In this document: positions 18,893-27,417 of the stretch, piece by piece
Position numbering within the stretch: the stretch's first letter is position 1
Layout of the letters: each line of letters starts with the position of its first letter
DNA from: Neoconidiobolus thromboides FSU 785
Lineage: Eukaryota > Fungi > Entomophthoromycota
Direction of reading: 5' to 3'
DNA: 64,000 bases
Assembly: GCA_025603075.1 (NCBI GenBank)
Contig: MU626261.1
Coordinates: 249,601 to 313,600 of the forward strand
Position numbers and translations under genes: made by a program
Notes under the pieces: model-generated
Databases searched by the model: none
What the model saw: only the letters and a program-made list of their open reading frames with translations
What the model was told of the DNA's origin: nothing

Positions 18893-19250
18893 TAAAACTA
18901 GAGATTTCCAAGTTTATATATAAAATGTGATAAAAGTTATCAAAATTTTTGGTGTTCAAAGAATGTAGTAGTTAAATATCAATAGCCTAGTGACTCATAT
19001 AGTCTTTTATCTATTTCTATTGGCTATTGCTTTCCATTTTGCTTTTTAAGCTCAGATTAGAAAAGGTTTACTTTAAAGCTAAGTTTAAAGACAAAACACG
19101 TTATTATGTAATAGTGTAATTTACTATAAATATTATTTTGCGTATAGTAAACAAGCATAATAATGAAAATTGTCTTCAATGATATTAAATTACGTAATTT
19201 ATAAGAATTTAAAGGTTTGATTTAGTCAATTAGTGGTTAATAATGTATGT

Positions 19251-19338
19251 GGGTGCGTTTTTTTAATTCATCACTTTTTCCACTTAAGTGCAAGTTGAGA
19301 TGCAAAATTGTTAGTAAAATTCTCAAAAATACATCCCC
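19251..19338 (-). mobile_element. MITE family A, copy 5 (degenerate, internally shortened)
   Basis: GGGTGCGTTTTT..CATCACTTTTTCCAC..TTGTTAGTAAAATTCT..AATACATCCCC; flanks ATGT/ATAT. Confidence 0.78.
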
Positions 19339-19904
19339 ATATATTATTTATTCGATAATTATCAAATCATCAAATATTGATATAGATATCATTTTAGCTT
19401 AGTTATGAGATATGCATATTGTTTTACTAGCCACATTATAATTATACTATTACTGTAGTTGGGTTTTAGCATTAGACTCTACCATTTTTCTTAGTTGGTG
19501 AATATACAATAGATTTTATAATCCTAATCTGCTATGGAAGTTACATTTAGTATTATTAATTCCTTCATTTAAAGGTATTCCCATTCAATATAACAAGTGA
19601 TTATATACATAAGAAAGCTTTATATATTTGTTAAAAGAAATAGGAAGTAGAAACAATTGGCTATTCTTAGTTTATATCTCCTAATCCACATGGTTTCATT
19701 GTAGGCTGTGTTTCAAGAATAAACTTTGAATATTATATTGACTTAATCAGCTAGTTTTAATGTAATAGTTAAATAATTTTTAAATATATTAACAATTATT
19801 GTTATCTTGCATCATAAATAGGCAATAGATTTAAATATAATAAAGTTGAAACATTTAAATCATGTAAGACATTACAGTTTTTTATGTTCAAATATGCGCA
19901 ATAT

Positions 19905-20855: not shown

Positions 20856-20942
20856 TGTAATAAATTAATTTCTAATATTTTTGAATTATAAGTTGTAAAT
20901 AAAATTTACTATATACGATTAATCATCATTGTTTGTATATAT

Positions 20943-21030
20943 GGGTGTTTTTTCGGCTTCATTACTTTTTCATTTTTTAAGTACTATTTGAATGGCAAAG
21001 TTAATAACTCTTAAACAAAAACATATCCCC
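20943..21030 (-). mobile_element. MITE family A, copy 6
   Basis: GGGTGTTTTTTCGGCTTCATTAC...CATATCCCC; flanks ATAT/ATAA. Confidence 0.82.
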
Positions 21031-21157
21031 ATAAAATAGTTTAATTCAATAATTTAAAAAACTGCCTTAAATTAAATCTACCAAACACACAAACATTACA
21101 TGAAATAAATTGTAAAAGTTAATAGCTTTTATAATTACGTTGATGGAATTATTAAAT

Positions 21158-21256: not shown

Positions 21257-21735
21257 AAATGTCGTATTTTTTGGTCTAGGCAATCTTACTAGATGGCTGT
21301 ACCTTACATTCCCCACTTTTAGAGGTTATTTTGACATTATAAAAGTAACAGAATGGGGGATAAATACTAGAATACTAAAATCAATTTTTAACTCTTATAT
21401 ATTCCATGTAATAATACAAGTGTCTAAAAATAATAATCATTACTACTCCTACCCATAATACAACTGCAATTTGGCTTTAAATAGACTTAAAATAAAAATA
21501 TAACTATTGTTTGTTATCCTAGTATTATCATGTTTTTAAAATGCTAAATAGTATTCCAATCTAAAAAAGCCAATCTACCAAAAGGTCAGCTTTCAATTAT
21601 CAACCTTATTTTAAGTAATAAAATATAATCATAAAACTATAATTTAACACTTAATATAACAAAATAGATTATTTAAAATGAGGTTTATTAATATCAAATT
21701 AATAAGCTTTGAAAGGGAGTATGAAGATAAATAAA

Positions 21736-22692
21736 TTAATCATAATTTTGTATACTACAAGAGGCATCGAAGGTGGCTGAAACATTGTCACCATCAAAGG
21801 TTTTTTGAATCTTTTCATAATTCGCTTTATCTTTAACATATAAATCGATTTGACCGGCTCCAAAGGACCAAGATTCATCAATAACCTTAAAGCACCCATT
21901 GTGAGTTTTACCATTAGGAAGTTTTAATCCTTCAAATTCAGCAATGTGTACAATTGTTCCGACTTTGTGATCATTAACAGCAAGAGATACGTAAGTTTCT
22001 AATTTATCACCTTTAGACCCAATTGGATCAGATTTCTCAAAACAATTGCAGTCATCATCACCGCAATTAATAAATTGACCATTTGAAAGTAAGCCACTGC
22101 CTTCTAAATGTACAGCTTTCCAGTATTCAGAGCTAACTTTAGCAAGAACACCACCTTTACAATTTGGAATTTCAGTGTCTTTTCCTGAAGGGAAATCACT
22201 TTCTTTACTTACCCAGTAATAAGTAAATTTGTAGTTTTCACCACCTTTACCACCACTGGATTTTTTTACTGGTTTTTTATCATCATCTTCGGATTCTTCG
22301 GACTCTTCAGATCCTTTTCCTTTTCCTTTTCCTTTTCCTTTACCCTTGCCTTTATGCTCTTTTTCACTTTTTTCATCTTCGTCTTCATCATCTTTTTTAC
22401 CTTTGCCTTTGCCTTTACCCTTGCCTTTACCTTTACCTTTACCTTCTTCTTCTTCCTCATCATTGCTATCTTCTTTATCTTCTTTATCTTCTTTATCTTC
22501 TTTATCAGAGTCCTGCTCATCCTCATCATCACCACCCATTCCTCGTCTTAAAATGTTCAACATTGGGGAATTTTCTTGACTGCGTTTGATAAGACCGGTA
22601 CCAGCATTAGTGTGGTTAATTGGACTAGCAATTACAGCACTTAAGAGAACGGTAGTGAAAGTTAAAGTAGAAAGAAACTGTCCAAGCTTCAT
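21736..22692 (-). CDS. Secreted protein: signal peptide + acidic/GK low-complexity linker + C-terminal 3D (MltA-like, three-Asp) double-psi beta-barrel domain; intronless
   Basis: Hydrophobic N-terminus MKLGQFLSTLTFTTVLLSAVIAS; dibasic KR/RR sites. C-terminal SLAVND..VGTIVHI..GCFKVIDESWSF..QIDLYV has the spacing of the 3D-domain aspartates. Domain assignment by eye only. Confidence 0.75.
   Translation of the reverse strand: MKLGQFLSTLTFTTVLLSAVIASPINHTNAGTGLIKRSQENSPMLNILRRGMGGDDEDEQDSDKEDKEDKEDKEDSNDEEEEEGKGKGKGKGKGKGKGKKDDEDEDEKSEKEHKGKGKGKGKGKGKGSEESEESEDDDKKPVKKSSGGKGGENYKFTYYWVSKESDFPSGKDTEIPNCKGGVLAKVSSEYWKAVHLEGSGLLSNGQFINCGDDDCNCFEKSDPIGSKGDKLETYVSLAVNDHKVGTIVHIAEFEGLKLPNGKTHNGCFKVIDESWSFGAGQIDLYVKDKANYEKIQKTFDGDNVSATFDASCSIQNYD
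22266..22535 (-). repeat. Coding low-complexity repeats: (DKE)x4 nonamer and two (GK)x6-8 hexamer arrays
   Basis: TCTTTATCT repeats and CCTTTA/CCTTTG/CCTTTT repeats on the + strand. Confidence 0.9.
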
Positions 22693-23199
22693 AGTTGATT
22701 ATAGTTGAGTTAAAGAAGTTAAAGTGTTAGTTTTTAATATCGTTAAAGAATGCTAATCGTTCCTTTTTATATGTTTATAGTGTATGCTAGGTCAAGATAG
22801 TAATTAATTATACGTTTTCATTATTCGTAAGGTTGATATGTTTTCAGGCGAAAGCGGACTAAATATAGATCAGTTTATTTTTTTATGAATAGTATTTAAT
22901 TAATTAAAATCATTTTTCAAATGAAATTGCCTTTTGTTATTAAAATTTAATTTAAGAACATTTTAATATTGAATACTAGTAGTAATTCTTAATCTATTTC
23001 AGATTTTACATTTTTTTACTTCAAGCTATTATCAATACTTAATTTATTAATAATCATTGAGCATAACACCATTGTCGTTTTTGATAAATATTAAAAATAT
23101 TATGGAGTATCAATAGATTGTTCTTAATTATGTAATTTATTAAAATAAAAAATTAAAGATTAAAGAATCTTAAAAAAGAAAGTGCAATTGAATGTACAT

Positions 23200-23287
23200 G
23201 GGGGAATATTTTTCGGTTTCATCACCTCTATTTTTAAGCACAATTTGAGTGATAAATTGATAAGATTCTTAAACAAAAAGGCATCCC
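23200..23287 (-). mobile_element. MITE family A, copy 8 (degenerate)
   Basis: GGGGGAATATTTTTCGGTTTCATCAC..AAGCACAATTTGAGTG..GATTCTTAAAC..CATCCC; flanks ACAT/ATAT. Confidence 0.78.
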
Positions 23288-24513
23288 ATATTAAAACTTC
23301 ATTTATAAAATAAAAACATGTAGGCTAATTAACGTTTTATTTGGTCTTTATTTAAGTTTTTCATGACTATGATTGTTTTTGAAAATTTGCTTATTAATAA
23401 AAATACACTATAATTTCATAAATATTTTTTAACTAAATGTACAATTATCTTGTTTTATTTTATTACCTAACCAGTTGTTTTCTAACATACAAGCTAGCTA
23501 ACTAGCTTTATTATGGCAAATAGGAAATTTCAAAACCTCAATACATTATACTTTTTAATTAATATTCAGTTGAGATCAAAGATGTATTTTGGTATAAAAC
23601 AATCAATAATGCTTTTATTTTGTTTATTTATCCATTTTTTTACACAGTAAGGATTAAAAAACAGTATTAAATGTTTAAACAAAAGTATTTCCATATTGGC
23701 TTTAATATCTTTTTCACTTGATTTTAAACAAAGGTAAAATATATTGGTCCATCGTGATATAGATGAACTATTGGAATCAGTATCTATTTTACGTAAGTTA
23801 GCTCGAGATTTAATGTTTAAAATGCCATCTACCTTTACTTTAACAAATTATTCTGATATTGATATTAGCTTATCATTCTAAAATCTTAAGTTGCCAAATT
23901 TATTTAACACTCTCTTTGGTCTTTCTAATCAATTGATTTAATTCTGAGTAGTACCTGTAACGCTAATTTCAGATACCCTACAAAAGATCCCAACCGAATG
24001 AATGAAATAAGTACTATATACGTTCTTGGTCGTAAGTGAAGTAACAGTGATTGGTAGCCTACCGGCAGTAGAAAATGGTTTTTAGTAAACCCAACGTTTA
24101 TACAAAAAAACCAGTCCTACTAGTTCTGATAATACAAGAATCTCAAGAAGTTGTGATAGCAAAGTATAAGCCGCAGCCAATCATTATTGAGTATGTTCAA
24201 TAAAATTAGTCTTAATAAAAATCGGTAGTTTTTTAGTCTTATAACATTTAAAGACAGATGGTAATTTTTAATACCTTATACAGCTCGTATAGTGGTTGAT
24301 TCTGTTTGTTTCTTTATACTTTTTGGGCTATAAATTTTATAAAAGATTCTTATAATATAAGATGCATTAAGAAATAATATTTACAATAAAATCTAAGTTT
24401 AATTGATAATTCTATATATCTCAAAAGCAAATGCTTTAGATTATACAATCGATATTGAGAATGTTTAAAACTATACATTTTCTTATACTTCAAGTTTATC
24501 TAAAAAAATAGAT

Positions 24514-24612
24514 GGGGATGATTTTTTTGATTTCATTACTTTTTCCACCTTTTAAGCGCTATTTAAGCGGAAAATTTGTTAGTAAAATTCTTAAACACAA
24601 AAATACATCCCC
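24514..24612 (-). mobile_element. MITE family A, copy 9 (near consensus)
   Basis: GGGGATGATTTTT...AATACATCCCC with AGAT/AGAT 4-bp duplication. Confidence 0.92.
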
Positions 24613-25438
24613 AGATATTTAATGTTATTTTATTAAAAAATAGAATTAGTATTATTTTATCGCATATTAATTTTTATTTTTCTTATGTAAATGAACTACA
24701 GTCCTAGTAAGATAAATTATTATTATTGTCACACCAAAGCTCTTTTATAACTAATAAGATTACACTTTCCCCCAGCATTGAAACCAAATAACCCAAACAC
24801 TATCAAAGTGTCAATCTCGCAACCCAATGTGGTTCGATGATTTTTAATCAAACTTACACACCTTTGGGAATTCCACTTCTAGTGGTTATAGGGAATTGAA
24901 TTACTTCATGTTGATAAAAATTGTTCTCATCTAGTCTACACTCAATAAAACTAATTTAATAACATCGATACATTGGTCTAAAATAATGGAAGCCAATATC
25001 ATATTTAATTAAAATATGACAAAAAGACATTAGTACCTTATTCTTATGCCAACTTCATTTCTCCCTTCATACCTAGGTTAATTAGAACCTCTTTAAGATC
25101 AAAATCCACTTTAAAACCAAAAATTTTAAATTAGTCTTAAGTTCAACTGTAACATTATATAAAATAACTGATCTATGTCTTCGGAGTTATAAATGTTTAA
25201 AAGACTGGATTTCATTGGTATATTGTACTCTTCTTTACATTAACTCGTTAAAAATTCTGAAAGCCTGTGCTCTTTGTTAAGACTTTTTATTTCTGTCATA
25301 TATAAGGATTTGAATATCATATCCCCACTGCTTACCAGAGCTTTGTAAATAAAAGTGACTATCAACTAAACACTGTATTCGATTTTCATGCCTATATGTA
25401 TTCTGTAATAGCAGTCAAGCCGTTTTATTTTAATATAT

Positions 25439-25536
25439 GAGGTTGTATTTTTGTGTTTATGAATTTTACCAACAAATTTTCCGCTCAAATAGTGTTTAAA
25501 AAATAGAAAAAGTAATGAAGCCAAAAAAACATCCCC
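25439..25536 (+). mobile_element. MITE family A, copy 10
   Basis: GAGGTTGTATTTTTGTG...AAAACATCCCC; ATAT/ATAT. Confidence 0.88.
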
Positions 25537-25689
25537 ATATGATAAATATTTTTTTGCCTTTTACACTACTTTTGCATAAATATTAGTTGATAAAGTTACT
25601 GTTTAAAGATGATTTATTAACTTAATACAATATATAAACTATCATTAGTAAAAGAACTTTTTGTATAAACATTTGATTAAAAGTTATAT

Positions 25690-25785
25690 AGGGATGTATT
25701 TTTTGTTTAAGAATTTTACTAGCAACTTTTCCACTTAAATAGCGCTGTAAAAATGAAAAAAGTGATGAAACCAAAAAAAACCCTC
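25690..25785 (+). mobile_element. MITE family A, copy 11
   Basis: AGGGATGTATTTTT...AAAACCCTC; ATAT/ATAT. Confidence 0.87.
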
Positions 25786-26320
25786 ATATTTTATAAGGAA
25801 ATAAAAAAACTCAAGTTAAATATAAAACTAAAGTTGATAGTGCTTTTAAGCTATTTCTTTAAATAATATTTATTAAAGATAATCAAATATTTAGTAGCTC
25901 TCTACATCCTTCCTCTTCCATTATAAAGATCTTGAAACCAATATACGAACTAATATTAAAATCGATAATAAAATTAGTATCAAAATTGACGCTAGCTAGT
26001 AAATATATGAAATATCTATTAAACTATTATTCCATATGTAGTTCATCATCTTATAACAGTTTATGGCTAAAGCATTACTTACCATGATAAAAAATAATAT
26101 ATTAAACTTCACGGTTTAATAAAAACATAATAAAATATTTAATTGTCAAAATTAATAACTAGACCCTTAAATAATACTAATAATAAAGGTTTTTAATAAA
26201 ATGATAAAAGTTGCTAGCATAAGCATGGTTTATCCTTTCCTAAACTAATGATGTCAGTATAGTCTTAATTAAGGATTCCTAATTTTGATTTAACGCTTTT
26301 TGTAAAAAATATAATAAAGT

Positions 26321-26417
26321 GAGAATATATTTTTGTGTTTAGGAATCTTACTAACATTTTTTCGCTTAAATAGGCGCTTAAAAGATGAAAGAAGTGATGA
26401 AGCCAAAAAAGCACCCT
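26321..26417 (+). mobile_element. MITE family A, copy 12
   Basis: GAGAATATATTTTTGTG...GCCAAAAAAGCACCCT; flanks AAGT/AAAT. Confidence 0.82.
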
Positions 26418-27417
26418 AAATGATATTTTTGTGGTTATAAACGGGTTTAACAATAAGATCATTGTTTTATTTCAATATTGAAAATGAAGGATATCAATAA
26501 TCCCCTATGAAAAGGAGCTATAAAAGTATGTTTTAGATTATTAAAAAGATTATCGTTTTTATATATTGCTTGTAACACCTCCACTTTTGTTTTAGTTTTT
26601 TGATTTTAATTTTAAGTTTGGAAGTTTTTGCTATTTTAAAATACATTTTCAATCAATCTTCAAATTATGGCTAAAAAAGATGTTTTAATAAACAAGATCA
26701 TCAGAGTGGTAGGTCTGGTTGCCTAATAAAATAGGAAATAAGTTTATTTGTAATGAAAATTTCGATTGCTGAAAATTTGATGTTTGTTAACTTAAAAACA
26801 AACGCAAATTTGATTATTTTTGTCATTTTGCTCTAAATGCTTGTATAGCTTTTTTCATCTTTAATGACGATAGTTGTTTAATTATTTTATTCTTTCGAGA
26901 ACAATCAATGACTAAAATATTTATTCTTTTATTTTGTAAAATGAGCTAATATTAAATTAATGGTAAAGTTACAAAACTCTCGAATTTATTGTTGTTATAC
27001 TATAGAAACTTATCTCTCATTGCTAAAAAATAAGCAATAGGAGTTTCAATTTCATAATTTTAACTTTACATTTGAATATTCAAATTCTAAAAAAATCTAA
27101 AAATCATTGTGGTGTCTTATTTTTAAGTTATAATGATTTCCCCTGACTTATCTTATAATCTAGAATAACTCATATGGAATTCAACACCAAAGTATTCTTT
27201 GGATTCCAATAAAATCGATGGGAAATAAATGAAAGTTAGAAACAATAAAAAATCAATTGCAACAATCTTAGTAATACAACTTAATGCTTATATACAAAAA
27301 ATAGAAATTTATTCTAAAATGCCTCAATTTCATGATTTAATCTTTCATTTTCAAATATGCATTTTATTTTCATAAAAAATAAACTTTATTTTGCTTTGCT
27401 TTTATCACTTCTATCAA

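Follow-up and report, generated by a model that had tools for sequence, protein, structure and literature searches.

In the early-diverging fungus Neoconidiobolus thromboides FSU 785, a gene on the minus strand of contig MU626261.1 (assembly GCA_025603075.1) encodes a protein whose C-terminal domain is very probably a divergent 3D/MltA domain, as judged by both its MltA-type fold and its homology. The gene lies in a stretch of 64,000 nucleotides (contig positions 249,601 to 313,600), hereafter referred to as the window, to which all coordinates relate. MltA is the membrane-bound lytic murein transglycosylase A of Escherichia coli, Neisseria, Agrobacterium and Acinetobacter and represents lytic transglycosylase family 2, which is GH102 in the CAZy classification. 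To our knowledge, lytic transglycosylases are regarded as enzymes of bacteria and phages only. The window protein is a eukaryotic variant of this known kind of enzyme; it belongs to a kingdom-deep fungal clan which keeps the MltA catalytic machinery, with a rebuilt loop, an altered triad and several copies per genome. The gene and its C-terminal domain are located as follows:

21736..22692, minus strand: complete intronless coding sequence, 318 codons plus stop (stop codon 21736-21738)
21739..22239, minus strand: "mini-MltA" or divergent 3D catalytic domain, residues 152-318, predicted from the model (predicted local distance difference test, pLDDT, 94.4), the structure matches and the homologues

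The domain comprises about 165 amino acids and folds, in the models, as a double-psi β-barrel with a reduced inserted lobe. AlphaFold modelling reached a pLDDT of 79 with an alignment of five sequences and of 94.4, together with a predicted template modelling score of 0.85, with an alignment of 35 sequences, for which all five models agree. Upon comparison with about 48,000 PDB representatives, the top match was 2pi8 (MltA; Z 10.4, 153 of 167 residues, root-mean-square deviation (rmsd) 4.1), and further MltA-family matches were 2pnw (Z 10.3) and 2g6g (Z 9.8). MltA chains occupied ranks 1-3 and 5-7, with Z-scores of 8.5-10.4 over 145-153 residues, and YuiC was matched with a Z-score of 9.1 over 88 residues at an rmsd of 2.4 Å. 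The same ranking was obtained with Foldseek, which placed 12 MltA-family chains under an E-value of 1e-3 (1.7e-5 to 9e-4) at a probability of 1.00, and also with an independent model from the shallow alignment. Thus, the 3D/MltA double-psi-barrel fold that had been proposed in an earlier, sequence-only reading of this DNA was supported by the AlphaFold and Foldseek comparison with MltA and YuiC that this reading had suggested. Near-identical shapes are present in the ESM Atlas, in a Mucoromycota cluster (template modelling score 0.90) and in a Myxococcota PF06725 cluster (0.85).

A lobe of about 65 residues is found at the position of the MltA insert, and the MltA alignments run through this lobe (about 150 of 167 residues). 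Since the MltA-type matches span both lobes, the domain is more than a plain double-psi barrel. According to the model, it has the two-lobed MltA arrangement with a shrunken insert and is intermediate between the lobeless YuiC and MltA with its large lobe. The E-G-S-G ... N-G motif pairs with Q-G-S-G ... D-G of LtgG at an insignificant score.

At the sequence level, the relationship is bridged by homologues. The whole protein returned only noise from its low-complexity linker when searched against Pfam and NCBIfam, the domain alone gave nothing in Pfam at E≤10, including PF03562, PF03330/DPBB_1 and GH45, and no PDB sequence was matched by phmmer with the domain as query. The PF06725 (3D) search, by which the sequence-only reading would have had its proposal checked, likewise failed at E≤10 for the whole protein and for the domain alone; PF06725 is matched by 16 of 51 relatives scanned singly (best E 1.9e-13). 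When 1.84 billion cluster representatives were searched with a profile, 1027 proteins were obtained at E≤1e-3, of which 516 are at E≤1e-10. The nearest relatives are fungal (59-68% identity); two of these, hypothetical proteins of N. thromboides with 59-66% identity, were found by word search. The bacterial relatives listed, nearly all of which carry PF06725, share 25-31% identity over about 90% of the window domain. YuiC, the only solved protein reached by a sequence profile, was obtained only at E 0.02 with the first profile (51 full-length proteins) and, as the Bacillus subtilis protein, at E 1e-3 with a domain-trimmed profile of fungal and bacterial sequences, which also reaches E. coli MltA, weakly but consistently. 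By these searches, the domain would be placed in 3D/PF06725 through transitive homology and not through a curated cut-off.

The domain contains the motifs FTYYW, LEGSG, AVND (238-241), HNGC, VIDES (270-274) and QIDLY (281-285), as well as six cysteines (178, 210, 215, 217, 267, 312). The Cys-containing C-terminal domain described in the sequence-only reading is, therefore, present, at a size of about 165 instead of about 140 amino acids. For the assignment of catalytic roles, reference can be made to YuiC, in which D162, equivalent to MltA D308, is the catalytic carboxylate oriented by T91 (T99 in MltA), D151, equivalent to MltA D297, binds the N-acetyl nitrogen of the −2 sugar, and D129 is equivalent to MltA D261 (PMC4499186); Asp308 of MltA has been restated as the single acid/base (PMC8562663). 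The corresponding residues of the window protein are listed below, with conservation counted in 75 eukaryote-type and 127 bacterial-type sequences:

22216..22224, minus strand: T157-Y158-Y159 in the first barrel strand; T157 corresponds to MltA T99 and YuiC T91, Y159 to YuiC Y93
21970..21975, minus strand: N240-D241; N240 occupies the canonical first-Asp position (MltA D261, YuiC D129), with D241 adjacent
21877..21879, minus strand: D272, corresponding to MltA D297 and YuiC D151 in profile alignments; conserved in 75/75 and 126/127
21844..21846, minus strand: D283, predicted acid/base, corresponding to MltA D308 and YuiC D162 in profile alignments; conserved in 73/75 and 125/127

D272 and D283 are 11 residues apart, as are D297 and D308 of MltA. 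The equivalence of T157 and Y159 was set by aligning residue 1 of the model with MltA 94 and YuiC 86, with the first strand taken as ungapped; T157 is conserved in 70 of the eukaryote-type and 119 of the bacterial-type sequences, and Y159 in every sequence of both types (75/75 and 127/127). All three aspartate motifs that had been read from the sequence are thus present, and two of the three aspartates, including the equivalent of the catalytic Asp308, align with MltA and stand in 3D columns. The first one is off by one column: the canonical column is occupied by Asn in 62/75 eukaryote-type sequences and by Asp in 117/127 bacterial-type sequences, and an Asp is found at the D241 position in 57/75 eukaryote-type sequences. 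A clean clan signature is H-N-G-C (75/75 eukaryote-type) versus H-D-G-C (127/127 bacterial-type). Cysteines 215, 217, 267 and 312 are common to both clans; C178 is mostly eukaryote-specific. In the loop between D272 and D283, GG-x-I-x-G of the bacterial sisters (GSAIKG in YuiC, GGAIKG in MltA) has become S/G-W-S-F in the fungal clan, with loss of the conserved Lys and gain of aromatic residues. That the catalytic set is nearly invariant speaks for an active enzyme which works by lytic-transglycosylase chemistry, and, as far as can be judged from these alignments, we consider such activity probable.

When compared with MltA itself, the window domain shares the double-psi barrel whose strands are interrupted by an inserted second lobe, a first strand with T-x-Y, the Asp pair with its 11-residue spacing and, possibly, the E/Q-G-S/T-G ... 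D-G motif in the insert; by structure, it is matched best by MltA (Z 9.8-10.4 over about 150 residues). In contrast to MltA, the domain measures about 165 and not about 335 amino acids, has a much smaller inserted lobe, carries Asn at the D261 position and SWSF-type residues in place of GGAIKG, and is only 15-17% identical; furthermore, the window protein is not a lipoprotein, has three probable disulfides and resides in a eukaryotic host. The YuiC/Sps-type 3D proteins of Firmicutes (PF06725) represent the minimal MltA core, in which T91, Y93, D151 and D162 match T157, Y159, D272 and D283; however, YuiC lacks the inserted lobe and forms a domain-swapped dimer, whereas the fungal family keeps the lobe of about 65 residues and cysteines absent from YuiC. 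The 3D proteins of Myxococcota (Haliangium, Kofleriaceae) and Bdellovibrionota have the mini-MltA architecture at the same length, an N-terminal hydrophobic leader and four of the six cysteine positions; unlike the fungal proteins, they contain A-V-D with the first Asp, H-D-G-C and GG-x-I-x-G, and pass Pfam 3D.

Named members of the family come from 33 fungal genera of Chytridiomycota (Geranomyces, Nowakowskiella, Thoreauomyces), Zoopagomycota (Conidiobolus, Neoconidiobolus, Entomophthora, Basidiobolus, Tieghemiomyces, Dimargaris) and Mucoromycota (many Mucorales, Umbelopsis, Endogone, Jimgerdemannia, Bifiguratus, Glomus, Geosiphon); no Dikarya are among them, in a search that was not exhaustive for Dikarya. 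The named bacterial relatives are from Haliangium, Kofleriaceae, other Myxococcota and Bdellovibrionota, including a Bdellovibrio protein labelled "murein transglycosylase"; these are predatory or formerly "delta-proteobacterial" lineages. An unrooted maximum-likelihood tree, built from 58 domains, has on one side all 20 fungal sequences that carry a name, the window sequence, one springtail sequence and five unnamed sequences, and on the other side all bacterial sequences; the dividing branch has a support of 100/99, and a quick tree of 106 rows gives the same split with a support of 97. Among the eukaryote-side sequences, those of Conidiobolus and Neoconidiobolus cluster with each other, whereas those of Mucoromycota fall into two or more old paralogue lineages. 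The gene is one paralogue of an ancient clan in early-diverging fungi and not a recent acquisition. A horizontal origin, as had been suggested in the sequence-only reading, is possible if ancient, predating the split of chytrids, Zoopagomycota and Mucoromycota; as a recent event it is contradicted by the native composition of the gene and by the 100/99 branch. With the tree being unrooted, we infer the donor and direction of such a transfer only provisionally. Taken as a whole, the data are a clean case of deep bacterium-to-fungus relatedness, together with a likely fungus-to-springtail transfer.

The family is already partly known to databases, given that UniRef labels several members "3D domain-containing protein". 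A literature search on 3D domain, MltA, GH102 and lytic transglycosylase in fungi, and on locus tags or accessions of four fungal members, found no paper on the fungal family; passing mentions were limited to GH104 in Umbelopsis and generic CAZy lists.

Upstream of the domain, the protein consists of a predicted leader and a low-complexity linker:

22624..22692, minus strand: predicted signal peptide, residues 1-23, from sequence and hydropathy, with cleavage guessed after VIA
22240..22623, minus strand: disordered, highly charged K/G/E/D linker, residues 24-151, from the protein sequence
22286..22506, minus strand: tandem DNA repeats building the linker, from repeat analysis

The N-terminus (MKLGQFLSTLTFTTVLLSAVIA) has a best 10-residue hydropathy of 2.29, as is the case for the N-termini of most family members. 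Because such a leader is present in the window protein and hydrophobic N-termini are found in 105 of 133 eukaryote-type members, secretion of the window protein is likely, in agreement with what the sequence-only reading had assumed. Also its description of an intronless gene with KR/RR sites and a charged linker was accurate: the frame is uninterrupted over 318 codons, dibasic sites are found at KR36-37 (22582-22587) and RR49-50 (22543-22548), and residues 24-150 contain 28 K, 23 G, 22 E and 17 D among 127. The linkers of relatives differ in both length and composition, that of the window protein not being conserved; in a Conidiobolus coronatus relative, a His/Lys-rich low-complexity linker is present. 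Since the linkers are wholly different among relatives, the KR/RR sites are not conserved, and pro-peptide processing at these sites would be speculation. In the DNA, the linker is built from 6-nt units (x7 and x8.3) encoding Gly-Lys runs, a 9-nt unit (x4.4, 100% match) encoding Lys-Glu-Asp runs and a duplicated 75-nt block (x1.9). As judged from these microsatellite-like repeats, the linker evolves fast through repeat slippage.

In the mechanism we propose, the signal peptide would export a disulfide-stabilised "mini-MltA", with the repeat-expanded polyampholyte linker carrying the domain of about 165 amino acids. The cleft between the two lobes would bind a β-1,4-linked N-acetyl-hexosamine strand, and D283, oriented by T157, would act as single acid/base. 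Attack of the C6 hydroxyl of the −1 sugar on C1 would cut the strand without water and leave a 1,6-anhydro end, as is typical of lytic-transglycosylase chemistry. The target would be bacterial peptidoglycan, so that bacteria could be killed or used as food in soil and on insect cadavers. This target is put forward tentatively, at rather less than an even chance and only marginally ahead of chitin; it is favoured because every characterised superfamily member known to us acts on peptidoglycan and because the nearest bacterial kin are predatory. An antibacterial role, argued from the fact that fungi have no peptidoglycan, is plausible. If these enzymes do cut peptidoglycan, they would be a so far overlooked means by which fungi combat bacteria or feed on bacterial necromass, with relevance to insect-cadaver and soil niches and to Mucoromycota housing endobacteria.

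Several points weigh against an active, peptidoglycan-directed enzyme. Besides the missing PF06725 match and the Asn in the canonical first-Asp column, the rebuilt loop may, from its sequence, indicate a changed substrate. The clan is so far known from sequences and models, and an ancient, vertically inherited, multi-paralogue family would suit self-wall remodelling just as well as antibacterial defence. The accessory modules of relatives lean, by their sequence assignments, towards chitin. Transcription of the gene, too, is no more than a possibility: 49-60% of the words sampled from 21500-22900 are present in six runs guessed to be RNA, roughly the share expected if the 957-nt ORF (open reading frame) were transcribed.

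The most serious alternative, to which we assign a substantial minority chance, retains the chemistry and replaces the target by chitin or partly deacetylated chitin. Such an enzyme would leave 1,6-anhydro-GlcNAc (N-acetylglucosamine) ends and may serve wall remodelling or attack on cuticle or fungal walls; it could work on the chitin/chitosan-rich wall of the fungus itself, while this grows, forms septa or discharges conidia, on the cuticle of insects, or on other fungi. Productive binding of chitohexaose is known for MltA, and a 1,6-anhydro disaccharide is made from chitopentaose by YuiC (PMC4499186); together with the fusion of relatives to LysM, CE4, CBM19-like and GH18-like modules, this makes chitin an equally live target. 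In line with this, the clan is kingdom-deep and multi-paralogue in lineages with chitin/chitosan walls, the 33 named genera include no Dikarya, the active-site loop has gained Trp and Phe, and one copy has probably been domesticated by a springtail. On the other hand, the two chitin-specific modules are below Pfam thresholds and occur in proteins from other or unassigned organisms, LysM and CE4 serve peptidoglycan too, the window protein is without a binding module, and the absence from Dikarya rests on a non-exhaustive search. Moreover, we know of no lytic transglycosylase that uses chitin in vivo and of no chitin lytic-transglycosylase activity in eukaryotes. The more specific scenario of a eukaryotic chitin lytic transglycosylase in early-diverging fungi and a springtail, which one ancient transfer from a donor resembling predatory bacteria would have brought in and which Dikarya would have lost, is less likely than not. 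If chitin is the target, this would imply a new chemistry of chitin turnover, a new class of wall-remodelling enzyme and a potential antifungal target.

Regarding the domain architectures of relatives, LysM fusions are found in six Mucorales proteins (P0017, P0027, P0029, P0034, P0160, P0279), which belong to a Mucorales subclade. P0072 is fused to a CE4 polysaccharide deacetylase (87.6 bits). P0064 (Endogone) contains a CBM19-like chitin-binding module at 19.7 bits, which is below the Pfam cut-off of 20.1, and P0033 (1212 aa) combines a metallophosphatase, teneurin-type EGF repeats and a weak GH18-like stretch (24.4, below the cut-off of 29.6).

It is improbable that the window protein is a non-catalytic double-psi-barrel protein, i.e., a wall-loosening or glycan-binding protein of the expansin, loosenin or cerato-platanin kind, which merely resembles MltA. 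Expansins, loosenin, papain inhibitor, kiwellin, cerato-platanins and GH45 are indeed among the structure matches (Z 5-6.8), and one of the three name-giving aspartates is displaced. However, what superposes in these matches is the barrel core, with only about 80-95 residues, versus 153 residues, including the inserted lobe, for MltA, and no PF03330/DPBB_1 or GH45 match was obtained at E≤10. Expansins, loosenins, RlpA, cerato-platanins and GH45 (DPBB/barwin-like) share the double-psi β-barrel core, but have no inserted lobe and different catalytic or binding residues. In addition, about 200 sequences show hardly any variation in the catalytic Asp, the Thr that orients it and the Asp of the −2 site, residues which a protein made for binding only need not keep. 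On these grounds (barrel-core-only overlap, no hidden Markov model match, a catalytic set that is kept), an expansin or GH45 identity was rejected; the expansin/RlpA alternative of the sequence-only reading is the weaker one, with its structural match confined to about 83 barrel-core residues.

A recent bacterial transfer, a contaminant or cargo of an accessory island, for which the intronless gene, the MITE-like (miniature inverted-repeat transposable element-like) repeats on its flanks and the non-syntenic closest Neoconidiobolus copy might speak, is highly improbable and was rejected, considering the G+C content at third codon positions (GC3) of 0.21 versus 0.21-0.26 in neighbouring ORFs, a codon-fraction correlation with the neighbours of 0.72, the position among eukaryotic genes, the fungal nearest relatives at 59-68% identity versus 25-31% for bacterial ones, and the location of all named fungi on one side of the 100/99 branch.

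In its genomic setting, the gene looks native. It is a single ORF at 21736..22692 on the minus strand, from ATG to stop. The G+C content of the 64-kb window is 27.5%, for which random stop codons are estimated at about 8%; therefore, an open frame of 318 codons, with a chance of about 1e-12 by arithmetic from this estimate, is no chance product. From their translations, the neighbours were read as PI4-kinase-II-like, SET/MYND, Zn2Cys6 factor and kinesin genes. With such ordinary eukaryotic ORFs around it and a matching GC3, there is no support for the accessory island that the sequence-only reading had placed it in. A paralogue in C. coronatus is also intronless and has an ordinary fungal context; synteny with the closest N. 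thromboides copy is not supported, the neighbours being different. A scan for bacterial promoters and terminators stayed at shuffle level, which is irrelevant for a eukaryote.

The term "MITE-rich", which had also been used for this region, holds in part: repeats of one family, about 110 bp long (77-89% identity, both orientations), have at least 15 copies in the window, clustered at 12-27 kb, with no copy inside the gene itself. The copies are located as follows:

19246-19345, 20932-21033, 23205-23291, 24501-24661, 25427-25554, 25683-25792 and 26312-26425, both orientations: MITE-like repeat copies of about 110 bp
13.3-14.5, 45.0, 54.7-55.6 and 59.8-60.3 kb: further copies of the repeat of about 110 bp

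Some individual family members deserve separate mention. A 42.5-kb JGI (Joint Genome Institute) contig carries two of them (P0006, P0154), so that local tandem paralogues exist. In P0001 (N. thromboides, 279 aa), the full domain is followed by the first third of a second domain up to the annotated end, which may reflect a tandem duplication or a truncated gene model. P0049, from a record of the lycophyte Diphasiastrum complanatum (64.9-kb contig), forms a long branch within the Conidiobolus/Neoconidiobolus/Entomophthora subclade and is possibly fungal DNA in a plant assembly or a transfer. The springtail sequence P0009 (Allacma fusca, contig CAJVCH010165075.1, L002:10001-11305) nests in the fungal clan and groups with an unnamed metagenome sequence at 99/97. 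Its gene has at least three introns and a G+C content of 0.37 versus 0.36 for the locus, and its surroundings on the contig, which is 99 kb long, are MIF4G/MA3, F-box-like and OCIA-domain genes; it is, thus, probably a real integrated gene that was transferred from a fungus to the springtail, rather than a contamination.

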